DNA of 63,333 nt, the filler included, from Dimorphilus gyrociliatus (taxonomy: Eukaryota > Animalia > Annelida): NCBI GenBank assembly GCA_904063045.1. It is 7 parts of 7 records of this genome, joined end to end, with 100 filler letters (N's around TTAATTAATTAA, not from the genome) between each part and the next. Parts side by side here need not be neighbours in the genome. Positions count along the whole stretch, not along the records: positions 7,559 to 27,990 come from CAJFCJ010000173.1; 6 more parts are not named here. One strand, 5' to 3'. The notes beneath the pieces were generated by a model. The model was not told where the DNA came from and did no database searches. It was given only the letters and a program-made list of their open reading frames with translations. How positions within the stretch are numbered: the first letter of the stretch is position 1; every line of letters begins with the position of its first letter. The translations under genes and the position numbers were made by a program. Below are positions 7,559-27,870 of the stretch, piece by piece.

Positions 7559-8220
7559 TTAAGGCTGCTTGGGACCGCCCTCAAAGAACTATTCTCAAGT
7601 TGTATGATGGAAGCAAGGAGTGTTCAAAATTCAAAAAAGACTTTAATCAGGCATGTTATGCTTATGGTTGGATAGGAGAAGATGTTGTGAAAGCAAATCT
7701 TTTAGATTATTTAACTGGTCCTGCAAAGGATTTGGTGTTGGCTCTGGATGGAGAGCCTACTGTGGAGGAAATATGGAAAAGCCCTCCATGACGAATTTGA
7801 TCGGATCCTTTGGAGTATCAAGAGAAATTGCTTAACTTAAAGCAAATGAATGGCGAAAGTGTGGTTCAGTTTGTTAATAGAGCAAAGAAATTGATAAAGA
7901 GGTTTTCTCCCACCTAGACCAATGGAACCACAATTGCTTGCAACTATTGAAAGAAATAAAACTGATGGAAGTTTTACAAAGAGGATTTACAACAGGATAT
8001 TCTACATTTAGTGTACACCTTACATCCTAAATGTCAAACATTGGGAGAACTATATGAGGCTGCTAAGCAAGCAGAAACTTCATTAAAACTAACTCAAAGA
8101 AAACTGATCACAATGGTGTCAAAATTGGAAACTCACAAAGAAAAGAGACCAAAAAGACCCAGTAATCAGAAAAGATGCTTCTACAGAAACCCCCAAATTT
8201 TGGAATAGAAAGCATGTACC
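7559..8220 (+). pseudogene. Gypsy A gag (middle and C-terminal part, frameshifted)
   Basis: 7559-7903 is the same sequence as 54914-55259, which follows an LTR, PBS and gag ATG. Confidence 0.8.
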
Positions 8221-8380
8221 TGACAACAAAAATGGTACTAAAGAAAAGTTTTCAAGCCAAAAAGTCCAAAAAGTATGCACCAACTACAACAAATAGGTAT
8301 TATAAGAAAAATCAACCAGCAAAGACGATACTGAAAGAGAACCTAAGCTACAAAAATTAGAAACATTAGACAATGAAAGC

Positions 8381-8896
8381 ATGTCAGAAAGCGACAAAGT
8401 TCAAGATATTCTCTGTTTTTCAGATAGTGACAAATCCACTTGTCAGCTGTTACAAAGCAAACAATCTGAGCGAAATGCTTCAACATTTATTGGACAATTT
8501 GAAACTAATACTGGTTTTAAGTTTGATGCCTTGATAGACTCTGGTAGTGATAGATCTTTCATTTCAAAAAAGGTATTAAGACAAGTTCAAGGAAAAGGCA
8601 TCCTTCCAGAACAAACTGTGAAAAATGCTAGAGATGCTTCAGGAAATAGCATCAAGATATGTGGAGAAATCATTCTCAGACTTTATTTTAATGGAAAGAT
8701 TATTAAACAATGCTTTCTGATCAACAAAATCATTACACAACAATGTATTATTGGGTGTGACTTTCTACAACAAAATGGAGCTACCCTTGACTTTGGCAAG
8801 AGACAGATTATACTCCAGCCAGGTACAGAAAAGAATTACCCTGTGGAACACAACACTTATCTTTCAAAGGATTTTACCCAGTTCCTCTTATTATGA
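8381..8896 (+). CDS. Gypsy A aspartic protease region
   Basis: ALIDSGSDRSFIS catalytic motif and IIGCDFLQ flap-distal motif. Confidence 0.85.
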   Translation: MSESDKVQDILCFSDSDKSTCQLLQSKQSERNASTFIGQFETNTGFKFDALIDSGSDRSFISKKVLRQVQGKGILPEQTVKNARDASGNSIKICGEIILRLYFNGKIIKQCFLINKIITQQCIIGCDFLQQNGATLDFGKRQIILQPGTEKNYPVEHNTYLSKDFTQFLLL

Positions 8897-9079
8897 AAAA
8901 GAATGAGAGTCAAATACATACCCTTCAGACAACAATTGAACAAGAAAATCCCGAGATAAAGGACAAAGTTACCCAAATTTTGGTGAAATATAAAGAAACT
9001 ATTGCAGAAGACAGATTTGATATTGGCAATCCAGAGTACCACCCTTGGAAATAACTCTTGAACCAGGTTCAACCAACAT

Positions 9080-10500
9080 ATAGACAAAGGCCATATAGAA
9101 TGCCTCCTCAAAAACAGGAAGAATGTAAGCAACAGATAGCTGAATTGGTAAAAAGCAAAGTTATTCAACCAAGCAAGAGCAATTGGGCTTCACCAATTGT
9201 TTTCGTAAGAAAGAAAGGAAGGTAGTCTACAAATGTGTGTAGATTATAGAAACTAAACAAAATGACAGTTAAAAACAAGTATCCACTGCCAAATCAAGAT
9301 GATCTTTTTGACCATTTGGGAGGAGGAAATAAATTCTTTTCTACAATGGATTTGACAAGTGCATACCACCACATTAACATCAAGAAAGAAGATAGGTCTA
9401 AAACAGCATTTATTTACACCTTTTGGCTTGTTTGAATTTATTAAGATGCCTTTTGGATTAATGAATGCCCCTCCTCATTTTAGTTATGTAATGAATTCAT
9501 TTGTGCTAAAGGATGTAAAGCATTTGTGCCTAAACTACCTTGATGACATAATAATATTTACCAAGTCGCTGGACCAACATTGGGAAGCATTGGGAGACCA
9601 TTCTTCAACAGATTCAAAAATACAATTTTAAGATTAAACTAAGTAAATGTGTGTTTTTGAAAGAACAAGTTCAATTCTTGGGACACATTGTCCAAAAAAA
9701 AAAATTTTATCAGAAAAGGGGATTGAAACAGATAAGTCCAAGACAGATAAATTATATAATTTACAGCCACCAGTGTTTGCAAATTCACTACTAAGCTTTG
9801 TTGCATTTTGTGGCTATTACAGAAAATTTATACAAGATTTTGCAAGAGTAGCTAAACCTCTGTATATGTTAATGAAACTACATGGGAAAAAGGATAAATT
9901 GCAATGGACTGAGGAAGCCAAGCAATCATTTTTCAAGTTGAGAGATGCAGTAGTTAACCCTCCTGTATTACAACTACCTGATTTTGCTAAAGATTTTCAC
10001 TTAACAACAGATGCATCAAATGTAGCTGTAGGAGGAGTTCTTGAACAAGTTTATGTAGATGAGAATGGGAAGAAAACAATGAAAACCCATTGCCTATGCT
10101 TCAAAACAACAATTCAACAATAATCAAATGAAATATGCAGCCTATCAAAAGGAAGCATTTGGTGTTTACTGGGTTGTAAAGAAATTTTTACATTACCTTC
10201 AAGACAAGCCATTCTTTTTATATACTGACCATCAGAGTCTAGTACAAACATTTAAGCAAACAAATTGAATGTCAGCACAGCAAAATGGGTCATGGCTTTA
10301 ATGGATTTAAAATTTACAATTAACTATGTGACAGGACGAAAAAATAGAGCAGATGCATTAACAAGATTAGAAGAATATACACCCCCAAGGAAAGTAACAT
10401 TTGAAGAGCTAATTCATGGAAGAATCAAAGAGGAGAATTCTCCCTCTATTTCAGTTAAAATGGAACAGTATGAACATACACCAGAGTTAACTTTGTAGCT
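9080..10500 (+). pseudogene. Gypsy A reverse transcriptase and RNase H (frameshifted)
   Basis: RPYRMP, WASPIVFV, KMPFGLMNAP, NYLDDIIIF, AFCGYYRKF, LTTDASNVAVGGVL, LYTDHQSL, GRKNRADAL. Confidence 0.9.
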
Positions 10501-11217
10501 ACCAGTGATAACAGTGAAGAGAAAATTGATTTGTCTTCTGTTGACTTACAGTCAGAAGCAAGAAAAAGATGTGAATTTAAAATCAATTAAAGAATATTTA
10601 ACACTGATGGTCAGCTACCTATTCCTTATTTTGGAACTTTTACACCTTTTGATAATGGAGATGTTTGTTCACAAGGAAATGATCTGGATTATCCTTGAAG
10701 AAAGAAACATTCTGGTTTTACCTGACCAGTTGGAAGCACTGACAAAACCCCACATGAAATATTATTTGGATTGAAGAATAGAAATGTCTTAGATCTATTA
10801 ATGGAAGTTCAATATTAGAACCAACAACAAAATTCTTATTTGATAGAAAACATGAACTTGAAGAAATTAGAGCAACAGCACTTTGTAAATCTGTTCTAAC
10901 AAAGAAGAAATATAGAGATAGAGTTAATAAAGCTATTACAAGAAAACCACCAACTTACAAAATTGGTGATAGGGTACACATAAGAAATGAAAACATTGGT
11001 CAAGGAATGAACAGAATAAATACAAGCAAATGGAGTGGACCATACCTTGTACTGCTACTGATACTACAAAATGTTTGTATGAATTACAAATATTGGCAGA
11101 TAAAAGAAAATTCTATCATGATAGTAGACTAAGACTAGCTAACAAACAACCTATAACAGTTAAACACAGTGACAGTAAGGAACCAACAAACAAATGGTGG
11201 AATACTTCCTATCAGAG

Positions 11218-11334
11218 TGTACAACTTTGGTTATATTTTACATGCTTGAACTCTATTATTTTATGCAACTTATACATGTACATCTTAAAACCTACGCAAG
11301 AAAATGCTATAATATTGGCCAAACATAAGTCTGA
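11218..11334 (+). repeat. 117-bp 5' fragment of LTR-A
   Basis: Begins TGTACAACTTTGG and matches 53970 onward up to AAACATAAGTCTGA. Confidence 0.85.
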
Positions 11335-11339
11335 AACAT

Positions 11340-12125
11340 AATATAACTAAAGACCCCTACCATAAATTCCCACTGGAAATGAGAGAAGCTGCCCAAACAG
11401 CTACCTTACTACATGGTATTGATTCAAATTTTAAGAATTTAAAAAAATTTACCCAACAGCTGTCAAGTCTTCTCTGCTTTTCCAAGTGGAACCAGTTACT
11501 CATGTGTTACAGCAAGTCAATTTGGAAGAGATTACCTATAATGAGTGTAGGTCTAACCAGTTATTCTACAAAACAACTCACAATCAATTAAATCCTATAA
11601 GAAACCAACTGATGAAAGACAAAACATATGTGTATTATTCAGAAAGAGGATGCAGATTTCACCACTGTGTCTGCAAAATCCATTCAGTTAAATATCCACA
11701 ATCACCTTTTCTGAACCAAAAATTGAAATTGCCTGATTAGCGACCTACTCCACCATGGGGTAAAGAAGGATATTAGAACTGATCTTACAAATTCCAGTTA
11801 TGCTGACAATAAAATAACAGAGGATACAAACTACAAGATCATTTCAAATAAAGAAGCTAATAGTATGGAGAAATATATTGGAAAGAAAACATCACTAAGA
11901 AAGGCCAATGTCACAGAAATACAAGATATTTTAACATATAATGATTGGTATAGAGATGGTGACAAAACCTAGCATATGCTGTTAAGAAATCATGCAACAC
12001 CATTAGTGAGGACTTGGTTTGTCAAAGAAATTATTTCTCCAGACATCTGGGATATTAACAACAAATACAAATATACACTTTTACAAAGAAAACCAATAAA
12101 TCACAATGAAAGAGGAAACAATTAA
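11340..12125 (+). pseudogene. env-like ORF3 fragment 1
   Basis: Near-open Cys-containing frames directly after the IN C-terminus. KTYVYYSERGCRF is paralogous to KTFIYYTRKGCRF in ORF 13507..13920. Confidence 0.5.
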
Positions 12126-12149
12126 AAAGCATAGAAATTCCAGAATCAC

Positions 12150-12620
12150 ACTGTACTTTGTTGTATTGTAATTGTAGGAAGTCCTAGCTCGTCACTATCA
12201 AATTCGTCCTCTCCAATCATTTACCAATGTGCCAAAGTACTGGTCCAAATAGAACCTTTCAAGTTTGTCCACAAGTAGTCTTAATAAATGTAATTCCAGT
12301 AAAGATTAACCAACAAACACCAGTATTTCATTCAAAGAATATGTATTTGAGTAAATGAGTTTCTAGTTCTAAACAAGCAAGTTTGAACAACCAGCTGATG
12401 GTTAGAAAACTGAACTGACTACTGTTAAATTCGTAGGGTTTATATACTTTTCCAATAGTTCACAGTTCACGGATAAAAATATTCACACAAACAAATGTAA
12501 CAATTTGGATAAAGGGAAAGTTCAAATATACTTCCATGTTTGTTACTTTTTCTTATCTTGGAGAACTTTTGCTCCCTATTTTAGTAGGTCAGAAAGTTGC
12601 CTAAGATGTAACAATTATTA
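12150..12620 (-). mobile_element. Gypsy family B LTR/leader plus gag N-terminus fragment
   Basis: Homologous to 24700-25035 and 53200-53700. Encodes GEDEFDSDELGLPTITIQQ. Confidence 0.6.
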
Positions 12621-13199
12621 ATAGAAGTTGGATTGATTCCAAAACACAAAAATAGGAAAAGGTCAACTTGATGCTGTTTTAATATACAACAAATTATTAA
12701 TAATAATTGTTTGTGTAAGATAATATGTTTCTGTGTAAAGGACTGGTAGGATAAAAGTATTAAACTTAATCATCCAATATAGTATTGTGCATACAATACT
12801 GTTGAAAAGTGACAATAATCTAAAAGCTCCAAATATAAATAGAATAGTGGAAGATATAATTAATATTCATTAAATATGATGTGTATAATAATTAGGGTTA
12901 ACATCTAAGTTGTAAAATACTTTTACAACTTAGTTTAAATAGTGTATGTTGTAGTTTTAGGTGTGTAGAGTACTCTATAATACTCTTTCAATATTGCTTT
13001 CCATTGATGAATGAAATGTAACAATTTGGGTGTATTGTGTGAATTTGCGAGCCTGGTTACAAGCTTATGTGTTTAGTACCTACAAACTGCCTAAATGTGT
13101 ACACACACCAAATAAATATAAAAAGATGCTATAATAACAGCTGCACTGTTAAACAATATTGACAAAAATTTTCAAAACTTTCCAACAGTTTTTAAACAA

Positions 13200-14249
13200 G
13201 TTTCACAACTTTTATGCAAAGAATTTATCATGAGAAACAGGATGATAGCCCTACTTACACCACTATCACCTCAACTACCAACAATACTTGGATCTAAACA
13301 TGGAACCCATAGTACATGGTTAGGAGATCTAACAACCCTCAATACATGTACAGAATTAAAAACTGTTCAAGTAGTTTGTGACACAACAATTATAACAAAA
13401 AATGGATTATGTTCAAAAGAATTTCTGATCAAATATAAAGATCTCCTATTCTCAATTGATCCAATACTTCATCATGCTTACCACATCACTAAAGAAGACA
13501 TAAAATATGGTACATGTGACCAAATTCAGCATCTCTTCAAGATCAAGAAAAATCATTTTGGATGCAGAACAAAACCAATATGCCATACATTCTGGCAAGA
13601 AGACATTTATCTATTATACAAGGAAAGGATGCAGGTTCCAAACAGCAGCAGCACAATCAATCAGAATGAAAATCAACAGTGAAATTGAAGAACCAATTGA
13701 AGACTTTAATCAGGCATGTTATGCTTATGGTTGGATAGGAGAAGATGTTGTGAAAGCAAATCTTTTAGATTATTTAACTGGTCCTGCAAAGGATTTGGTG
13801 TTGGCTCTGGATGGAGAGCCTACTGTGGAGGAAATATGGAAAGCCCTCCATGACGAATTTGATCTGGATCCTTTGGAGTATCCTTGTCACCAACACAACA
13901 TCTATTTTCTTCATGGATAAGAAAACCTTTCAAAATACTAATAGACACACTTCTTCCAATTATACTCTTGATTGGAATTGGATTCTTCATTTACTTTATT
14001 TGGAAGAAAAAACTGAAAAGAGTTCAATTTACCAGACTGTCTAAACTATTGACAAAAACAAAAAGATTACCTTCAGCTCCAACAGCTGAATCAGAAGAAA
14101 TAGAACTGCAAAATTATCCTATGTTCAGAAAAAATGGTGATAACATAATTGTCACAAGTCCTAGACCTTTTGTGGAAGCAATAAAACCTATTAAATTATA
14201 TAAAGAATATTGCTATTTGCAACCTAGCATTAATATTACAATTTATTAA
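13200..14249 (+). pseudogene. env-like ORF3 fragment 2 with C-terminal transmembrane anchor, interrupted by a gag-A piece
   Basis: ORF 13884..14249 has LLPIILLIGIGFFIYFIW followed by KKKLKR. 13701-13882 matches gag A. Confidence 0.6.
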
Positions 14250-15029
14250 TCCATACATTTAGGATTTTCAACTAAAACTAGTTAAATTAATTATCAATTA
14301 TGCTAAAATTCTAAGTTTAGATTATATTCACTATCCAACAGTATTGTGTATACAGTTTTTGGGGAATCATGAAATGCTTGAATCCATAGTGAACTTAACA
14401 AAGGGTCTAAGTCTGTCACATTTGGAAAACATGTCACTTAATGGAGCATTTACAATAGACTGTCTTTATTATGAGGTAACACTTCAGTAGTTCATATTCA
14501 GTCATTTGAATTTACTAATTTTCAGATTTCTACTAAGAAATACATTTTAAAAATAGAAAATATTTATAATAGAACAGAAACAAATGAGAAAAATGATATT
14601 TGTTCATTAGGCTTATTAGTTAAAAAACTTTTGCAAAAGAGACAGCAACACATCAATATATTAAAGCAAAGATAGTGAAAAGAGTTCTATGCAACTATCA
14701 GTCTCTCTTTCTCTAGGACTGAACAAATATTCCCATTTTTCTACAGTCCTATGTGTAAAATATGTGAAATTTTCTCTTTAATAATAAAATATTACTTTTT
14801 TGAAATTATATCGTGATCTTTGAACTAACCATTGCTACGAAGCAATGGTCTGTGGCATTGAAGTGAGTGGTTGTGAAAACCAAAGTGTTATGTTAATGTT
14901 AAATGTATGTCATATGTTAAAAAGAGGACACAGAGACATCTCGATGTCCAAAGCATGAACTTGATGTAAACTATTTTCTATAAGCTTTATTCAAATTTTT
15001 TAAACAGAAAGAACATTTAAGAAATGTTT

Positions 15030-18000
15030 TCATTCCTTGAACTCTCTTTCTTTTAGTAATAGACTATTGGCAATATTACCAAAGGCAAAAATATCCTGTT
15101 TTTCATTTAATAAAGTCTTCTCACAAATACATTGTGTATGTAAAAAATACTTGTCACAAGAAATCTAAGATATAAAGAAGAGAAAAAATGAATAGTTCAT
15201 GTAAAGAATAATTGCTGCTAATATTTTTACCTCATAAAGAATATCATTTAATGATATATTTCCATTTAAAGACAGGTTATTTGAATGTGAAAATTCCATG
15301 GCTTTTGTAATATGTATTAAGCACTTTAGCAGCTCTCTTTTTTCCATCAATTTACTTGATTTACTTGATATCTCTACCTTTTTGTATGAATTAAATGTGA
15401 TCTTATGACCAAGAAAGAAGGTATTCAGGTTGTTGTAAAAATCAAAAGCTATAAATATAACAAAAGTATCACTTGAAACCATGAAAGATTAGCATAAAAA
15501 CATTTCTATATAAGTTGTTCATCAATGTCCTCCAAGTTAATTTATTGTTGAAGAATAAACTAAATGTTATTAAATAATTACCTTTAGACATTACATCTAT
15601 ATTGTCCTGTTGTTCTCTGTGATTTAAATTAGATAAAAAAAGAGATGAAAGGAAAAAAGAAAACAATTTCAAGTAAAACTTAACAGTCTCTTGAGAAGTT
15701 TGTTTCTTTCCTTAATTTTATAGTTAACAAATTCACCACAAATGAAGCATAATGGGTCAAAAACTGAATTAAAAACTAACATAATTGAAATATACAGAAT
15801 AATTGTATTGTTTTTTAATGATTTAAAATCAAAGAATGAAAGTATTCCTGTTTGGAATGAAAGAAAGATAATATACAATGAATATAACTTCATATACTGT
15901 ATATGAAAGGGGTCGGGTGTGAACGTACCTGGGTGCGAACGTACCCGGGTGCGAACGTACCCTGGGCGGGTGCGAACGTACCTGGGTACGTTCGCACCCT
16001 ATTTTTATATTTATTTTATTTTTGAATTTTTGAATAAACATGTACATTGACACCCTTTTTTCCTTCTGTTCCTTCATTATATATTTGTTAATATATTGAT
16101 TTGATAGAATGCAGATATTAAATAGAATACATATCCCATCAATATTAAATTACTACTTTAAAAGAAAATGTTGTTGAAAGTGAAATAGCAGCCATTTTAA
16201 TAGTGATAGTTTTATTAAATAAACTTTCACTTGGAATATTTATCCTTGCAAAAGTAAAGCTATATTTACTGAATAAATTTGGACAAAGTTCTTCTTGGAA
16301 GCTTCAACAGAAGTGAGTATTTATATCTAATCATTGAGATTGTTGATTCATGATATTTTGATGTAATATACTATCTTCAATTGTGAAAAAGCTGAATATT
16401 TTTCATAAATAAAATTTCAGCCATTTTGAATATTTGGAAAGGAAATTTATTGATAACTGGAAATATTTTTAGATAACCATCTACATTTGATTGAAGATTA
16501 AAAAATGGCTTTCAAATGTCACAATTGTCATTCAACAATTTATGGAAGGCAAAAATATTTGAAATGCAGCCTTTGTAAGAATCTTATTCATAGGAAATGC
16601 ACAGGTATGTAACTCTTTAATCAGCTTTCATGTAATTATATTTTTTAACATATTCTTATAGAAACACATAACATACCAATTTGCAAACCTTGTAACAAAA
16701 GAAAATGTACTGTCATGCTCAAGAAGTTAACTAATCTGGAAATTCATCAATTCAAAGTAAATTCTGAAGAAAGCTTTATTGATGAAAGAAATAAGATTGC
16801 TGCAGTTGAGGAATCAATATTGGAGGATGAAAATCATGTTCTTTCAGAATGCCAATCAATGGACCTAGACTCTTTGGAGGAAGTTGAAGAGAATGCTGAA
16901 GAATATTGTGAATCATCCACAAAAAGTGATTTTGAGATTGTAAAAGGAGGAAGTAGAAAGGGACATGACATTTTACTGAATGATGGATATTCTTTTGTTG
17001 TTAAACATAAAACACCATCAAGTACTATTTGGGTGTGCAGTGTGAGAAGTAAGAAGAAAAGATGTGTGGCCAGAATAAGACAAAATGGAAATTTATTTCT
17101 CAAAGGCAATTTGGAACATAATCACAACAGAAAAAAGAATTTAGAAGTGGATATTAAAGTGAAAACAGATTTGAAAATTGTTTGCAGAAGTGATAATCAA
17201 ACATCTGGAAGAAGCATTGCTGAAAAAGTTCTTCTATCCTATGAACCCAATGCAACTTGTCTTCCTGATATCAACTATTTGAAGAGAATGGCAAACTCAA
17301 ATAGACAAAAGTTTAGGCCAGTGGAACCTAAAGTGTACAACTTTAATTTAGATGAAACATTTTTGCCTGATGAATTTTTGCAGAAAGATATTTGTGAAAA
17401 TGGAGAAAGAATTTTAATCTTTGCAACAAACCATCAGCTGAATTTATTATCAAAATCCAACTGTTGGTACATTGATGGTACTTTCAAGATTGTAAAAGAA
17501 CCATTTTATCAACTTGTCACTATTCACTCATTTGTTAAGAAGAGTGGTGATATGAAGCAAGTTCCTCTTGTTTTTATTTTTCTGACTTCAAAGCATACCA
17601 AAGCATACTTACAAGCATTTCAAGTAAATATTTCATATTATCTCTTCAAAAGTGATGATAAATAAAGTTGCTTTTTTGTAGCATATCAACAATCTTATCA
17701 ATGATTTTCATCCAAAAAGAATTACAATGGATTTTGAAAAAGGACTATGGAAAGCATTATCAAAAGTATATCCCCTCACTGAATTTCAAGGTTGTGTATT
17801 TCATTTCACACAAGCAGTATACAGGAAAATACAAGTCAGTTACATTCAAATATATATAACATTATCTATTAAGTAACTTATATTATTGAATAGGCTCTTG
17901 GCTATGTAAAGAAATACAAAGAAAAAGGAAATGATTGGAAAGATTTCAGAAAATTGATGGCTCTGCCATTCTTGCCAGCACATATTATTCAACCAACATT

Positions 18001-21000
18001 TGACAGCATAAATGCAGAACTTTGTGAAAAAAATAGATTTTTGGACCTGCTGCAATACTTCCAAACAAACTGGATCAAAAATAAATTATGGAAACCAAAT
18101 AACTGGTCAGTTTTTGGTTTGTCTATTAGGACCAATAATGATTGTGAAGGATGGCATCAAAGAATGAATAGTAAGCTGCCTGCTAAAGGTTCTTTTTACA
18201 TGCTGGTTGATGAGCTAAAAAAAGAGTCTGAGTTGATTGCAGTTTATGAGAAATTACTGTCAGAAAAAAGGATTTACAAACATCAAAAGAAAAAGTATAT
18301 TGACATCCAAAAGAAAATTTTTGATTTATGGGATGATTTCAAGTTGAACAAATTGACATCAATTGATCTATTAATGCAGACATCCCATATCTACTCTCCA
18401 GCATAAATATCATTTGTCAAGCTTTATTGTTTTTTAGTATAATATTTAGTCTTTTAAATACATACTTTTAGATTTATAGCTAAATCTTTTATTCAAAAAT
18501 TCAAAAATAAAATAAATATAAAAATAGGGTGCGAATGTACCTGGGTACGTTCGCACCCGCCCAGGGTACGTTCGCACCCGGGTACGTTCACACCCAGGTA
18601 CGTTCGCACCCCAACTCTATATGAAATTCAATGTGGTAGAGAGATTTTCTTACACAAATTCCTTTGATAAATATTGTATAGTCTTAGCGATTTACTCTTT
18701 TTCAGAACATATTTTGTTATCAGCTGTAAGAAAAGCTCCCATCAACCCTTTAAGAAAACACTTTTAAATACCTAATATTGAAAAAAACAACCAGGCAAAC
18801 ATATTTGAAAATGATATTGATACAAGTGCATTATGTAATTTCACTTTAGTTCCATTTTTTGCATTCAATTTTTTTGTTGATTTAATATATAAACTACTTA
18901 TTATACAACAGACTATTGGTGTGATAATACTAAAGATAGTGAAAGGCATTATCCAATATTTTTTATTCTCCTTTCGTATTTGTACAAAAAAACAAATTGG
19001 AGAAAGGCTATGCATTTTCTACAAAAACAACAATTTTTCAATGCTATTAATGAAATGTTTTAAATTTTTATTCTTTTGGCCTACACTATTATAAGCTAAA
19101 GGAATGATTGACATGAATAGGCAAAAAATTATTGATATAGAGGCAAATTTCCATTTTGAGGACTTTTTAATCAGAACAGTATGATAACTACTGAGACATA
19201 TCAAAAGTGTGCTTGTCAAGGATAACACTGATGAAAAAGTCATAGCTATTCCTAAAAATTGGCAAATATTACTATTCCTCCATTCATGATCAATTTCTAT
19301 ATAAGATAATGAATAATATGCATCAGCAACTGCTATTGCTACCACATAACATGATGTTAAAAAGTCACTTATTATCAAAAGTATTTGAAAATATTTTAGG
19401 TTTTTGTTCAAGTAGACACTTAAACAGAAAGAAACTGCATTACCAATTAGACCCATTATACCAAAAGACCAGAATATTATTCTTACTGAAGTTGAAGTTA
19501 ACAGTGTTTTACAATTAAAAAAAAATGACAAAGATGGAAAACACTCTGTTAACTTTCCAAAATATTTCCACACAAGGCAACAAAATTGAAATTTATCACC
19601 ATGAATTTCTTTTACTTTTGTTAGTCCAGATAGCATTTTTCTTGCCTCCAAAATTGAAATATTTGATTGATTTATATAAAGGAATTTAAGATTTTTCAAT
19701 GAAAGAAATGATTCATTTTCAATGGTTTTAATTGGACAATTTGACATTTTCAAAATCTCTAATCTATGCAAAATTTTAAAATCACCTTCTTTAATTATGT
19801 TCACATAATTGAATGAAATGTCAAGATATCTTAAATTGGAACATTGCAAATTCTTTGAAATAAAATTTAGAGATTGAACATAATTAAATGAAATATCTAA
19901 ATGCTGTAAAATTGTTAGAGGTCCATATAGGATTATTAGTGTTTCAAGACTATTGGTAACATTATTAAGTTGTAGATAAATTAAATTTGGAAATAGAGTA
20001 GCATTCATTTGAAACTGTAAGGAATGTTTTACACTCAAAAAGAATAAATCTAATGATAAAAAATTCAGAAAATCTTTTGGCATTGTTCCAATAATTAAAA
20101 TTCTTTTGAGATATATCAATTGGCTACTTTTGTTATTTTTATATTGAAGAAATTGTACTTGATCAACATCTGTAAATTGGCAGGACATTTGAATATTCAA
20201 ATTGATATTACAATTTGATGTTGCAGTTATATTTGGTATTGAACAAAACAATTCATCACTTCCACTTAAACAATTCACCAGTCCATCACAAACTTTTGAA
20301 GTAGTAATAAAATATCTTTGATTTCTGCACTTAAAATACCCATTTGCTACAAAATTATCTGAATTTATGGTGAAAACTGTTGAAATATTATAGATTTTTC
20401 TATATGAAACTAACTGCAATCTGTTTCGTCATCAGCTAGGTAACAATCAAGTGTACCATCACAAATTTGTTCAATGGATATGCAATAGTTGCTTTTATAG
20501 CAGAGATATTGTCCATAAGGGCATGATGTTCTGACACATTTTGATGTTACTGAGTATAAATCAGTTTTTGGTAGTCCTATAGTGTTTTTCAGGAAATAGC
20601 ATCTACTTTCATTAGGCTCTAAAGTGTCTCTAGTCTCTTTTTCGTCAATAGTACAGTCTCTTTTTCCATCATTTTTCATAAAAACTGGTATACAATAATT
20701 CTCGCACTTTAATTGAAAATCTCTGTTACAACCTGTGCAAAGCATACAAAGTAGAAAAAATAGAATCTAAATGGATCTTGCCTGTTTGATACTCTTTTAT
20801 CAAAGCATTTTCCATAAAGCAAATTTCATCAGATTGATCAAAGCAGTTTTTTTCATTATCACATATTTGACTTTTATGAATGCATTGTTTATTGTGACAA
20901 TTTCTACATTACAATATAAAAGAAAAGTAATCTTTTTTTAAAAAGATTGTACCTACATGAAATTTCCAAAACAGCTTTCCCTTTCTGTGAAAAATAAAGA

Positions 21001-24000
21001 AAAATGGTAATGAATTGTTATGTTAAGAAGATATTGAAAGAACTAACTACAATATCTTTCATCAGAATTGTCAGAACAATCATTCTGATAATTACAAACA
21101 TTTACAAAGCTAATTTTTTCCCTTGTGGAAAAACAGTGAAAGTAGTTAGTTTGATGGTCTTGGCAGAATTCTTTGTCTTCATCTTCATTAGTTATACAAT
21201 CATTAACTCCATCACAAATGTATATTATATTTATATATATTTTAGTACGGTAACAAAAAAAAGTATTCAGCAGGATTGGAGCCTTTTTCTTATTTATTTC
21301 TTCAAAGTTTTCTGGTCTATATACATCTATAAATCGAGAAATTGAATATGAAGGAATTGATATAGTGAATAAGAGGGAGAATTGTAAGACTTTAGAGCTA
21401 ACTCTGAATTTTTTGACAGTAGACTGGTCTTTTAAATTTTTCAAAGCAATTGAAAAATTCTACTTCTAAATTATTAATTATCAGAATAGCAGAGCTTTGT
21501 GTCATAAAAATTAACTGCTAAGTAATGACTCAAATTAAAATTGCTTTTAATTACCTCTCATCTAAATCACCTTTTGAATCCTGAAAACTCTGTGCAGCAT
21601 ACAATGAAATAACAAAATATTCAAATAGTTTTTTCTTTCATGTTGTTTTAGTTCAAGACTTACAAAAAGTGACAACTTCAAACATTTAGATATAAGTAGT
21701 TGTTCAGCAGGTTTTGGTTTAAAAAGAAATTCTCTGTTAAGATTATCAAAAATATGATTTGACTGAAAAAAAAACCCTTTATATATTTATTATTTTTAAT
21801 ATTTTGTTACTTTTTTCATCACTAACATCACTATGACTGTAAAGAGGAATATTGGTATTTATTCCACTTGAACTCCCATAGACTGAATAGTTATTGTGAT
21901 GTCTCTCTTTTAAATGTACTATTGAAAGAAAAACAATCAGTTAATTTGAAAGTTTGTTGGAAAAGATATATTTTGAGATCATTTACTAATAATATAATTT
22001 CCATAATTGGACTTTAAAGATACTCTAGAATTTTCAATTTCTTCCTTTAGTGCTATTAGATTGAGAACAAAATTTTTTTCCATGGTTGAAAAATCAGCTA
22101 GTTTTAGATTTTCTCTTTGACAAACCAATTCCCTCTCCTTGATATTTAATGATATATTTGCATCAAATGAATAATAACATATGTCATATATTATTAAGAC
22201 TTTTTCACCAAAACAACCTAAAGATAAAAGTTCCTTACAAAAGAGTGGGTTTAGAGCAGACAGAACAGAGGGTACAAAAGAACTGTCAATGTCCTTACTC
22301 CCTGGATTACAAATAGACCCTTTGTATCTTTGTTAGACAAACCTATATATGATCTGTTTGAACATTCTATAAAGTACATTGCTGCCATGGTACTTTTTTG
22401 AATTATCATTTCATTCCTATTAAATTACAGATATAATTTAATATGCATTGTCAATTTGGAGGTTAAAGACAAGTGACTTCACAAACAGTTGACCAGGGTG
22501 AAATATGATTAATACATAAAATAAAACAAATAAAACCTGCCAACTTTATATTTTGTGTTCAGTTGTCCTGAATCCTCTTTTACTTTACTACTAAAATTAC
22601 GATTTAATGATATTGCAATTAAAAAGGGAAGTTTCATTTCCATTGCACTGAAGTGATGAATATAAAGCTAAATTGTTTTTCACATAAAGTAGTTCGTGGT
22701 ATCTGCTAAAGTATAAATTTTCTCCAATAATAGTTCCATACTTGAAACCAAATGCTTGGCATATCTTTTGAACTTCATTATAGTATAAATAAGCAAAACT
22801 GATCCAAGTAAAGTTATATACTTGAAATCTTCCAGCAAAACTATAAAATGAGTGTTTGTCACCAAGATATAGAATTTTGTCAGGGCTGTTATATAATCTA
22901 AAGGCTACAGAATATTTGATTGTGGCTTTAAATTTTGAAAATAAATGCTATAGAGAAAAGTACAGGAATTATCCTTAACTTTATCACATTTTAGCGAAAC
23001 AAGAATGAATTCAACTTTTACTTTTGGAGAAAGTATTACACATGTCTGATTAATGTCTTCAATATTTTGACATTTTGTTAAATATGGTATTTGTTTCTAT
23101 TAAGCAATTTACAAATATACTTAACAACATTGTTTTAAAATTATAGACTTTTGAGACCTCTAAATCATTTGTTTTTTTAAAGCAGCTATCTTCTTTCAGT
23201 GACATTGACATTAAGCCACAAAATACTTGGCAGTAGAAAATGGATGAACTTTCTCTTTTATTGTAGACTGTTAATAGTAAGCCATATGTTTTGGATTTGA
23301 TAAAATATGGCACTGTTTCCTTTGAAACATATGATAAATAATATTTTTCCCAATTTTTTGCTTCACTGTATTCTAATACTTGAAAATCTTTGAAAAAATA
23401 CAAGTAAAACATGTCATAACATTGTTTTTTTGAAAATGTTCAGAGAAAGTACCTTCAAAATCCATATATGAACAAAAAACATAATGGATGCTCTGAGATA
23501 TTTCATCAATCATTATTGATTTACTTGAATTTAAAAATAGTTTGATTTGTCTTGAAATATTGGCTGCAACAATTGGATATTGAAGAACAAAACTACTTTT
23601 CCTACATATTTCCTTTCTGTCCTCTGGATAAGAATAGACTTTGTAATGTTTAAAATTTTTATAGAAATATAGTTGATATTTATTCTCTGATATTTGACTA
23701 GAAAAATACTCTGCTATAATATCCAATGGAATATTAGAAATTAATATTAAAAAAAATCAATATGTATCAATTACTTTTTTTGGAACAAATTAAAAGTATT
23801 CCATTTTCATTGTCATCTTTTTTTGAATTACTTGAAATATTTCTAGAAGATAGGTTTATAATGACTAGCTAGATGATTTTTTCAATTATTCTCAATACTT
23901 ACAAAAAACAATTTGCTATTATTTCATTACAAATCATTTGTACAAGACTGGTATTGTTATCAACAATCTGCCATGGGTAAGACAGGGAATGGAGTACATT

Positions 24001-24225
24001 ATAACCCAATTTTGAACAGAAGGAATTAAGAACAATATCTGAAAACTGGTTATAACTTGCAAAATATTCCTTTTCAATTACTTTAACTTTTAAAATTCCT
24101 TTAATCACAGATTCATTCTCTTCCAATTTAATCATAGAAAATTTAATTTGGTCATATGCTGGTAATCCATCAACTATGGAGATAATGTATTTACATATGA
24201 GGTTGAATGTGAATGATTCATACAC
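15030..24225 (-). CDS. Multi-exon GRL101/LGR-type GPCR: divergent SRCR-like modules, C-type lectin, six LDLa repeats, LRRs, 7TM and a kinase-like tail (5' end unresolved)
   Basis: LDLa motifs (CDGVNDC, CNYQNDC, CDNEKNC, NDGKRDC, CDGTLDC, CDGLVNC), LDISFN LRRs, FCCL hinge, TM1 GLIGNA, ECL1 W.NSNICQFLG, TM7 NSVFDP. The 3' exons splice in phase at GT-AG junctions. Upstream junctions were not fully resolved. Confidence 0.8.
15909..18617 (+). mobile_element. Mutator-like (MULE, Phantom-type) DNA transposon, apparently complete
   Basis: 130-bp TIRs (15909-16038 and 18488-18617) with tandem GGGTGCGAACGTACC units. Perfect 9-bp TSD TATATGAAA at 15900-15908 and 18618-18626. Confidence 0.95.
16505..18406 (+). 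CDS. MULE transposase, 575 aa: PHD finger + FLYWCH + DDE; join(16505..16604,16662..17623,17682..17834,17894..18406)
   Basis: C4HC3 pattern, W.C...C...HNH, YIDGTF, MDFE, GCVFH, TNNDCEGWH. Three 57-59 bp GT-AG introns restore one open frame of 1728 nt. Confidence 0.88.
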
Positions 24226-27074: not shown

Positions 27075-27870
27075 CTAATCAGGGGAGAAATATAAACATT
27101 GTGTACTAACCATTATTGATGTTTTCCACACAATTGACATTAAGTACCCTTTTTTGTGAAAAAGAAGTCCTTGTTTCAATTGAACAGAATATTCTACCAT
27201 AATTTTCAGATGTTGCACAATATTGGAAATAATAAAATGACCTCTGTTGAAGGAAATTATTATGTTATCAATTATTTTATGAAATATTTTACAAACTTTT
27301 GGAACAAACTTTATAGGCTTGCATGAATGATAATCAATTGATTTATTAATTAAGCCACAAAGAAAGGTACATGCATCATATATTTGAACTGTATTGCTAA
27401 ATGCAGTTGGTATAATTCCAAAAGATTTTGACTTGATGTAGTATCTTAAGGATTGTTCCTCATCAAGAGTGAGTGAAAACAAATATTTTTCCAATAATAA
27501 ATGATTTAAATTTGCTAATTCTAATTTAATGTCTTTGAAAAAATAATATTAAATGTCTTACATATGAAGACACTTTTAAGTCATATATACCAACCATGCA
27601 GTTGATGAGAGAAGCATGTCATCATTAAACTAAAATTAAACTTTTGGAAACTTTTCTTATAGGTTTCATTTGAGTATAAAGCCAGTGAAACACCAAAAGT
27701 CAGGTTGTATTTTATATATGTTATAATGAAGAATTCAGCAAGTTTACAAAAATCATTTTTAGCTGAACTGTGACCTTGAATTAAATAATTCTTTTGTTCA
27801 TTTCTTAGAACTAAGTTATAGGTTTCAATTCTATCTTTGCTTGAAACTGGTATAGCAAAGATATCTGTAA
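27075..27870 (-). CDS. Exons encoding divergent extracellular modules paralogous to the GPCR ectodomain exons (same gene or neighbouring paralog; partial)
   Basis: YYIKSKSFG..CTFLCGL (27075..27494) versus YFIKSKTYG..CQVFCGL (23059..23412). Confidence 0.5.

Follow-up and report, generated by a model that had tools for sequence, protein, structure and literature searches.

A receptor gene of the annelid Dimorphilus gyrociliatus, lying on the minus strand of the 63,333-nucleotide stretch of DNA analysed here (the window), likely belongs to a lineage-specific family of LDLa-LRR rhodopsin-type seven-transmembrane (7TM) receptors resembling GRL101/LGR, in which the disordered C-terminal tail has been replaced by a folded domain derived from the kinase core. 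An animal receptor of LGR/GRL101 type with a kinase-derived tail has not previously been described, and, if the reading is true, this would be the first 7TM–kinase-fold fusion on such a receptor, earlier fusions having all been found outside bilaterians (PMC12716839).

All features of the receptor gene are on the minus strand. Its upstream exons span 19019..21444, with LDLa repeats in the ORFs at 21444-21043 and 20745-20410 and a single 466-codon frame at 20419-19022 carrying LDLa, LRRs and TM1-TM4. When the window's frames were compared with Pfam, Ldl_recept_a, LRR_8 and LRR_4 exceeded their cut-offs in the ectodomain exons; no 7tm_1 match came from these frames, and PF00001 is present in homologues P0069-P0071. 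TM5 and TM6 lie in an exon at 18764..19015, an ORF that ends ..FFSILG and is co-linear with the frame ..IVFSILG..GISSLFYD of paralogue L013. The exon for TM7 and helix 8 (15685..15847) is preceded by an AG at 15849-15848 and is entered in phase 1 and left in phase 2. Its product reads ..GILSFFDF..NSVFDPLCFICGEFVNYKIKERNKLLKRL and carries ..NSVFDPLCF..NYKIKERNKLLKRL, and it matches a TM7 HMM with E=6e-24; 25 TM7-like paralogous matches were found in the genome.

Downstream of helix 8, the frame would be carried across two or three short introns into a further ∼130 residues. In the three-intron model, proposed intron 1 (15617..15684, 68 nt, GTTAAGT..CACAG) has its donor at 15684 in phase 2, and inside it lies the in-frame stop at 15671-15669 that ends the unspliced frame, as the original prediction had placed it near 15669. 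Proposed mini-exon B (15582..15616, 35 nt, EQQDNIDVMSK) follows from phase arithmetic, and proposed intron 2 (15449..15581, 133 nt, GTAATT..TTTATAG) has its donor at 15581 in phase 1. Tail exon C (15231..15448) contains a linker, the beta5/alphaD remnant, alphaE (LLKCLIHITKAMEFSH), a degenerate catalytic loop (SLNGNISLND) and beta7 (ILYE), while intron 3 (15165..15230, 66 nt, GTAAAA..TCTTAG) is in phase 0 at a position that recurs in paralogues. Tail exon D (15030..15164) contains beta8 (KYFLH), alphaF with the subdomain IX motif (EKQDIFAFGNIANSLLLKE) and a TGA at 15032-15030. The splice sites, phases and terminal TGA originally predicted all agreed with the sequence when the coordinates were re-checked: the phases match at each of the three introns and T-rich tracts precede all three acceptors. 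The proposed introns, at 68, 133 and 66 nt, may be set beside the species' median intron of 66 bp (PMC7854359). Since the DNA is 28% GC, a path of GT-AG sites carries little weight by itself, and support for the model comes from homology. Exon B is its least certain part, being too short for a homology test. A donor directly after helix 8 is also possible in many paralogues, and in the window two alternative paths lead in-frame from helix 8 to exon C, one from the 15684 donor to an AG at 15473-15472 (a 213-nt intron) and one that uses a weak GTTTTA donor lying 5 nt beyond it together with the acceptor of the original model. Every splice path enters exon C in the same frame. An AATAAA stands at 14986-14991 on the minus strand, ∼40 nt past the stop codon; the motif is common in AT-rich DNA and lends weak support.

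The state of the window's own copy is a separate question from the existence of the family. Neither the E/DRY nor the NPxxY hallmark of a rhodopsin GPCR is kept in it: the end of TM3 reads SSY where paralogues have ERH, ERY or DRH, and TM7 reads DPLCF where paralogues keep NPxxF. The TM6-TM7 intron, the last large one, is occupied by a 2.7-kb DNA transposon (15915..18611, plus strand) with a FLYWCH-domain ORF at 16715-17662 (Pfam FLYWCH E=4.4e-7), bounded by inverted tandem arrays of the 16-mer GGGTGCGAACGTACCC at 15915-15987 and 18564-18611. Given the lost E/DRY arginine and this insertion, the window copy has probably begun to decay or become uncoupled from G proteins. It is a serious possibility, although we lean against it, that the copy is a pseudogene whose spliced protein is never made, the family-level reading being right all the same. 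Both altered motifs and the transposon would fit this, as would the genomic setting: the contig is small and rich in TEs, C150 and C205 carry near-identical copies, and on C205 no TM7 exon was seen up to 1.5 kb from the tail. Against it, all exon frames are open and the splice signals intact, and an intronic transposon does not per se break a gene. Functional GPCRs with DPxxY-type TM7 motifs exist, which also counts against a pseudogene.

Exons C and D can be placed in a far larger family. Exon C matches positions 3-72 of the tail profile (E=2.4e-20) and the coding part of exon D, 15164-15033, matches positions 72-113 (E=2.2e-12); profile searches of the genome found at least 168 matches to the two, and in alignment A3 dozens of paralogous exons line up with them without a shift in register. 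The intron between them falls after ..Y[E/D/Q/K] recurrently in paralogues, and in seven paralogues C and D form one intron-less frame. The fold and profiles were built on these natural intron-less paralogues, and the window exons were used singly, not as a joined protein. A genome-wide 7tm_1 scan gave only canonical GPCRs, and co-location was counted with our own TM7 HMM. By this measure, a TM7-like exon lies upstream on the same strand within less than ∼1.2 kb in 23 of 34 distinct tail loci, the other 11 having no TM7 exon within the stretch of sequence examined. Of the 25 TM7-like matches mentioned above, 19 have a tail match no more than 1 kb downstream, compared with ∼0.1% expected from the density of tail matches. 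Older paralogue pairs have a pN of 0.28-0.36 against a pS of 0.65-0.84. Young pairs give dN/dS of 0.7-1.4 over ∼40 codons, too few to decide, and on account of these values some tail copies may be pseudogenes. Judged from this conservation, exons C and D are real coding sequence, and the genome appears to hold about a hundred copies of the tail, most of those examined sitting behind putative LDLa-LRR seven-helix receptors. On the genomic evidence the tail is the hallmark of a large lineage-specific gene family rather than a one-off.

Public annotation scarcely reflects this family. Among 68 significant matches to the tail profile in 1.8 billion proteins, there is no long product, annotated or derived from transcripts, that has both a 7TM region and the tail, and therefore public annotation omits either these genes or the tail. 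The only annotated D. gyrociliatus match is to exon D alone, in P0062 (NCBI CAD5126779.1, DgyrCDS14824), which maps to C82 (identity up to 98%) and in which the D exon is joined to an unrelated ectodomain. When the 466-residue frame and P0070 were used in word-based protein searches, only a few fragments and no annotated D. gyrociliatus proteins came back; AT-rich words had probably filled the limit of 8000 candidates, and these searches are uninformative on annotation. The family seems to sit mostly on small TE-rich scaffolds and is apparently absent from the public protein set.

These observations bear on whether the tail belongs to the receptor at all. Exons C and D could be conserved coding sequence outside the receptor mRNA, belonging to a small gene of their own or copied along with the receptors in segmental duplications, with the receptor ending after helix 8. 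This arrangement would accommodate the lack of any annotated long protein linking 7TM and tail, the 11 loci of 34 without a TM7 exon, the tail copy right behind a retroelement both in the window and on C118, and the D exon fused elsewhere in P0062. We nevertheless consider it improbable. The order TM7-C-D is fixed on one strand, at a spacing of 150-600 nt behind TM7, across 23 loci, and a 3.6-kb contig from a second organism carries LDLa-LRR-TM1-4, TM5-6, TM7 and tail in the same order (its frame matches 7tm_1 at E=2.3e-4, below the Pfam cut-off). Good donors directly after helix 8 give in-frame paths, in spliced members no ATG stands close to where homology begins in the exon C frame, and a 110-residue intracellular-type domain with neither a signal nor a membrane anchor of its own suits a fused tail.

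As for the nature of the tail, the original prediction had called it kinase-like, specifically a pseudokinase, and had pointed to alphaE, to a degenerate catalytic loop comparable to the HGN of guanylyl-cyclase kinase-homology domains and to the DVWSFG motif of subdomain IX. All three landmarks were recovered in profile, profile-profile and structure comparisons: the alphaE helix, the loop SLNGNISLNDIL, with N-G-N at the position of H-R-D, and the D-x-W-x-x-G motif of subdomain IX/alphaF (DIFAFGNIA). Profile and structure searches with the tail, of the kind proposed as a check, returned almost only kinases and pseudokinases. The kinase core was therefore upheld, but a whole pseudokinase was not, the tail being a ∼110-residue beta5-alphaF fragment; HRD, DFG and most of the N-lobe are missing as predicted, and so are the activation loop, APE and alphaG-alphaI. 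Neither the Gly-rich loop, the VAIK lysine nor the alphaC glutamate of the N-lobe is present, the profile and the model both starting at beta5, and the linker from helix 8 to alphaE is only 30-60 residues. The last ∼110 residues would run from beta5 and the hinge through an alphaD remnant, alphaE, a degenerate loop with N-G-x for H-R-D and a beta7-beta8 hairpin directly into alphaF, with 24-27 residues missing where DFG, the activation loop and APE would stand. Conservation falls on the structural skeleton of the kinase core: a histidine closing alphaE, the loop's N-G and, in alphaF, the Asp and Gly. In alignments A2 and A3 no columns are better conserved than H, D and G, which in the window lie within EFSH and QDIFAFG, while the Asp position of the loop varies among K, N, Q, D, E and G across the family. 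Lacking an N-lobe, the HRD aspartate, DFG, an activation loop and alphaG-alphaI, the predicted tail cannot be catalytic.

Taken singly, each sequence-level match to kinases is weak. The best tail member matches Pfam Pkinase at E=0.0045 and 16.9 bits, against a gathering cut-off of 31.7, and PF00069 and PF07714 gave no match on the window's own exons. When the family profile A3 was compared with PDB sequences, 31 of 34 matches were kinases, aligned in two co-linear pieces, the best being NEK1 at E=0.0041; among 1.8 billion proteins it matched four kinases that Pfam confirms, with E from 7.9e-7 to 6.8e-5. An hhalign comparison with the kinase P0047 gave a probability of 92.6% and E=4.5e-7. AlphaFold confidently predicts an independently folding tail (pLDDT 92.4, pTM 0.84), and the top Foldseek matches of the model are all kinases, with E of about 0.01 and none below 0.001. 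In VIA-align, 100-109 of 110 residues were aligned in the top 50 structures, which are all kinases or pseudokinases (Z 7.6-10.9, including Rad53 at 10.9 and the RNase L pseudokinase at 10.6), and in the ESM Atlas the named neighbours are all Pkinase clusters. A homodimer prediction for the tail scored 0.26 against a mark of 0.32, which speaks neither for nor against self-association. The kinase-core fold is present for the beta5-alphaF portion only, the protein ending before alphaG-alphaI. Together, the sequence comparisons and the model support reading the tail as a ∼110-residue kinase-core remnant from beta5 to alphaF. That the tail is a genuine receptor domain of a new small alpha/beta fold, its kinase likeness arising by convergence or from AT-rich composition, gains something from the Pkinase score that no member lifts to the cut-off, from PDB and Foldseek E-values no better than 0.004 and ∼0.01 and from a shared extent of ∼110 residues with few motif positions, but it is very unlikely given that four independent types of comparison yield kinases alone over the same co-linear region, that the hhalign gap of 24 residues falls exactly at DFG and the activation loop, that the 50 best structural matches are kinases without exception, and that the conserved alphaE histidine and alphaF Asp..Gly are known structural anchors of the kinase core.

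Receptors of the GRL101/LGR type (LDLa, LRR and 7tm_1) have the same ectodomain, and probably the same 7TM architecture, as the window receptor, whereas a typical relative, P0071, ends ∼30 residues past NPxxY with no folded tail. Kinase-derived domains without catalysis are known elsewhere. The kinase-homology domain of receptor guanylyl cyclases is regulatory and non-catalytic, with an HGN-type degenerate HRD loop, and like the tail it is a pseudokinase linked to a membrane receptor, HGN standing where the tail has N-G-x; in contrast to the tail, which has no N-lobe and nothing after alphaF, it has two full lobes, binds ATP and is followed by the cyclase domain. KIND, the kinase non-catalytic C-lobe domain of Spir, PTPN13 and very-KIND, offers a protein-binding surface and, like the tail, derives from a kinase without N-lobe or catalytic residues. 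KIND, however, is a whole C-lobe of ∼200 residues through alphaI, while the tail has no activation segment and does not continue past alphaF; no KIND family match occurred among Pfam results at E<=10 for the window exons and tail members, and to our knowledge KIND does not occur on GPCRs. Close parallels are the 7TM-kinase fusions, which a 2025 survey found only in oomycetes, amoebozoans, choanoflagellates and sponges, and which have arisen repeatedly with none characterised functionally (PMC12716839). Like the tail, GPCR-TKL/K and GPCR-TK of choanoflagellates and sponges and the oomycete and amoebozoan fusions place a kinase fold at the cytoplasmic C-terminus of a 7TM region (PMC12716839), but they carry whole, Pfam-detectable kinase domains on 7TM families unrelated to LGR/GRL101, whereas the D. 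gyrociliatus case is a bilaterian LDLa-LRR rhodopsin-type GPCR with a 110-residue non-catalytic fragment. The order of 7TM followed by kinase fold is shared; the complete kinase domain C-terminal to 7TM that marks GPCR-TKL/K and GPCR-TK is absent. A literature search found no publication combining GRL101 with a pseudokinase, and the D. gyrociliatus genome paper does not mention the receptor-tail family (PMC7854359).

Without catalysis of its own, the tail would serve in protein interaction, much as KIND domains and other pseudokinase scaffolds do, and might link receptor activation to a partner in the cytosol or to contacts between receptors. More speculatively, and on balance we are doubtful, some hundred bilaterian LGR-like GPCRs may end in an autonomously folding 110-residue minimal kinase core that forms a new receptor-proximal signalling or docking module, supplementing or replacing G-protein and arrestin coupling in a fast-evolving, largely unannotated and possibly chemosensory or immune family. 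We know of no kinase-derived domain smaller than this beta5-alphaF core, and the tail would show how far the kinase fold can be trimmed and yet kept. The D. gyrociliatus genome was described as having few expanded families (PMC7854359); as a large family is seemingly missing from the public protein set, the gene counts and receptor repertoires of the species may be incomplete. The window also holds a second, convergent copy of the tail on the plus strand at 14350..14657 (C-like 14350-14481 and D-like 14520-14657, with profile E=6e-11 and 3.8e-15), which lies directly behind a retroelement, and the same retroelement-tail junction is found on contig C118.

The receptor gene lies on the minus strand of positions 7559–27990, a clearly eukaryotic stretch (GC ∼29%) that belongs to contig C173 of the Dimorphilus gyrociliatus assembly. 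Its LDLa exons (21444–21043 and 20745–20410) are followed by a 466-codon frame that holds LDLa and LRRs, both matched by Pfam, and TM1–TM4 (20419–19022), by a TM5–TM6 exon (19015–18764) and, after a 2.9 kb intron, by the exon for TM7 and helix 8 (15847–15685). We re-derived the path beyond TM7 base by base: donor GTTAAGT at 15684 (phase 2), exon B (15616–15582), donor GTAATT at 15581 (phase 1), exon C (15448–15231), donor GTAAAA at 15230 (phase 0) and exon D (15164–15033), closed by a TGA at 15032–15030. All phases agree, and the splice sites and stop codon of the original prediction stand; the unspliced frame, predicted to stop near 15669, ends at 15671–15669. The three introns measure 68, 133 and 66 nt, and since the median intron of this 73.8 Mb genome (about 350 scaffolds) is 66 bp (PMC7854359), those of 66 and 68 nt are typical for the species. 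Exon B, of 11 codons, is the most tentative part of the model, and two other in-frame paths lead from helix 8 to exon C, though every such path preserves the frame of exon C. The same link in paralogues is sometimes one short intron, for example of 51 nt on contig C199 and 63 nt on C36.

Since a GT-AG path in AT-rich DNA is little proof, we sought relatives of the tail encoded by exons C and D. Exon C alone as query returned dozens of weak paralogues within the assembly, and queries with exon D and the TM7 exon likewise found paralogues there. At the paralogous loci TM7, C-like and D-like exons recur in this order on one strand within <1 kb, with a common C/D intron position after ..Y[E/D/Q/K], while in seven paralogues (C69, C13, C205, C199, C12, C36 and C152) C and D form a single uninterrupted frame. 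These seven, together with single-exon rows and with no exons joined, make up the tail-family alignment and profile A3, in which the window's exons C and D align in register. Searched against the assembly, A3 gave at least 168 matches, a lower bound with 150 of 435 candidates scored. In 23 of 34 distinct fetched loci, HMMs of TM7 and of the tail placed a TM7 exon 150–1200 nt before the tail and in the same orientation; in the reverse direction, 19 of 25 TM7-like matches in the assembly had a tail match at most 1 kb downstream. Old paralogue pairs show far fewer non-synonymous differences than synonymous ones (pN 0.28–0.36 versus pS 0.65–0.84), and young pairs, compared over only ∼40 codons, are near neutrality. 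Most tail-family matches are on small contigs (C34–C265), not on those of megabase size, and many have another member beside them in tandem or convergent arrangement (e.g. C160 and C72), a placement that suggests hard-to-assemble, rapidly duplicating arrays.

The same gene was found in L060, a 3612 bp Logan contig (SRR23372228 and other runs) with 21% GC, on which LDLa-LRR-TM1–4, TM5–6, TM7 and lastly an intron-less tail follow one another, with very short introns. Its tail is only 41% identical to the best D. gyrociliatus match, and the contig is that of another, even more AT-rich organism. On these sequence grounds we conclude that the tail is a regular C-terminal domain of a family of LDLa-LRR 7TM receptors, because of the paralogues, the TM7-C-D order, the intron-less frames, the pN/pS of old pairs and the second-organism contig. 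The splice re-derivation and the paralogous loci show the receptor–tail architecture and confirm, at the level of the genomic sequence, the predicted splice model that links a 7TM receptor to this tail.

Similarity of the tail to kinase folds was found both by profiles and by predicted structure. Pfam gave no match on the window's own tail exons and a sub-threshold Pkinase match on a single paralogue (E = 0.0045). Among all PDB sequences at E ≤ 10, protein kinases account for 31 of the 34 matches of A3, with NEK1 (0.0041) and titin kinase (0.0057) at the top. Each alignment to a kinase falls into two co-linear pieces, A3 positions 21–72 to kinase alphaD/alphaE, catalytic loop and beta7, and 74–112 to the region that leads into and includes alphaF, with ∼27 kinase residues skipped in between. 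A search of 1.84 billion representative proteins gave 68 significant matches, mostly ORF-sized fragments of the tail family, among them four genuine Pfam-confirmed kinases (E 7.9e-7 to 6.8e-5, the scores summing several weak stretches). Aligned to one of these four by hhalign (probability 92.6%, E = 4.5e-7), A3 shows a 24-residue gap spanning the DFG and activation loop.

At the structural level, an AlphaFold2 model of the intron-less C69 member, made with A3, reached pLDDT 92.4 and pTM 0.84 and consists, in order, of a strand, one short and one long helix, a hairpin and a second long helix. The best PDB matches by Foldseek were all kinases (TM 0.5–0.6 on the query, E ∼0.01), and in an independent search against 48,000 structures the top 50 were kinases and pseudokinases only, including Rad53 (Z 10.9), the RNase L pseudokinase (Z 10.6), NFR5, PEAK3, PAN3 and IRAK3, with 100–109 of 110 tail residues aligned. 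The named neighbours of the tail in the ESM Atlas were all Pkinase clusters. Together, profiles and model assign the tail to the fold of the kinase core.

In the window tail, LLKCLIHITKAMEFSH corresponds to alphaE; in SLNGNISLND, N-G-N takes the place of H-R-D, S that of the loop lysine and D that of the loop asparagine; strands beta7 and beta8 are ILYE and KYFLH, respectively; and EKQDIFAFGNIANSLLLKE is alphaF with the Asp and Gly of subdomain IX. This mapping supports the original kinase reading (alphaE, a degenerate catalytic loop and a subdomain IX motif) and upholds the claimed absence of HRD, DFG and most of the N-lobe. The N-lobe, the activation loop, APE and alphaG–alphaI are all absent, and the catalytic Asp position is unconserved across the family. 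The tail shows the loss of all catalytic elements and is only the structural skeleton of a kinase core; judged by its residues, it cannot be an enzyme.

KIND, a kinase derivative consisting of the C-lobe only, is the nearest concept for this domain, which is about half its size and gives no match to the KIND profile. By analogy with KIND domains and other pseudokinases, the tail could serve for docking or scaffolding at the cytoplasmic end of the receptor. G-protein coupling may persist beside it, since most paralogues keep ERH/ERY/DRH and NPxxF. The data support reading the window gene as a putative receptor–kinase-fold fusion, whose kinase part is a non-catalytic remnant. The 7TM-kinase fusions known from oomycetes and amoebozoans (2025 survey, PMC12716839) differ in having whole kinase domains and 7TM families unrelated to the window receptor. 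Our literature search found no paper covering both GRL101 and pseudokinase, and the genome paper leaves the tail and receptor family unmentioned (PMC7854359). The receptor–tail family seems to be unannotated or mis-annotated, because a 1.8-billion-protein library held no long annotated protein uniting 7TM with the tail, and the only annotated D. gyrociliatus match of the tail profile is CAD5126779.1 (DgyrCDS14824; contig C82, 34173–36077). In that protein an unrelated, ectodomain-like region rich in cysteine leads straight into a D-type exon, with no membrane segment; it is probably a chimeric gene model.

The window copy itself has SSY at the end of TM3 (∼19120–19230) and DPLCF in TM7 (∼15740–15770), both on the minus strand, where paralogues have ERH/ERY/DRH and NPxxF, which suggests that canonical G-protein coupling was lost or that the copy is in decay. 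It may be a decaying family member, given these residues, a transposon in the TM6–TM7 intron, the TE-rich 54-kb contig C173, and near-identical copies on C150 and C205. Upstream of the LDLa exons, several minus-strand frames of 110–140 codons at 23059–24225 and 27075–27494, without a Pfam match, are similar in sequence (..YYIKSKSFGIIPT.. and ..YFIKSKTYGLLLT..), possibly as repeats of an ectodomain module at the N-terminus of the receptor. As the contig ends at 27990, the 5′ end of the gene may be cut off.

The intronic element is a FLYWCH-type DNA transposon of ∼2.7 kb (15915–18611) with a FLYWCH zinc-finger ORF (16715–17662) and a further ORF (17954–18403). Tandem arrays of a GC-rich palindromic 16-mer, GGGTGCGAACGTACCC, flank it in inverted orientation (15915–15987 and 18564–18611). 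On the plus strand, a Gypsy-type retroelement (7600–13900) carries frames for aspartyl protease and RT-RNase H, several of its frames being interrupted, and an exact 143-nt direct repeat (7637–7779 and 13700–13842); it may correspond to ‘Dingle’, an element that PMC7854359 names. Directly after it, a second tail copy with C-like and D-like exons (14350–14657, plus strand) is convergent with the receptor gene. The retroelement–tail junction recurs on C118 (locus L058, 1874–2283), C150 and C205; retroelement and tail were therefore duplicated together as one block. Finally, an open plus-strand frame without a Pfam match (13884–14246) encodes a single strong transmembrane helix (ILIDTLLPIILLIGIGFFIYFIW) with KKKLKR behind it, and could be the membrane anchor of an env-like protein of the retroelement or belong, as an exon, to the tail gene on the plus strand.
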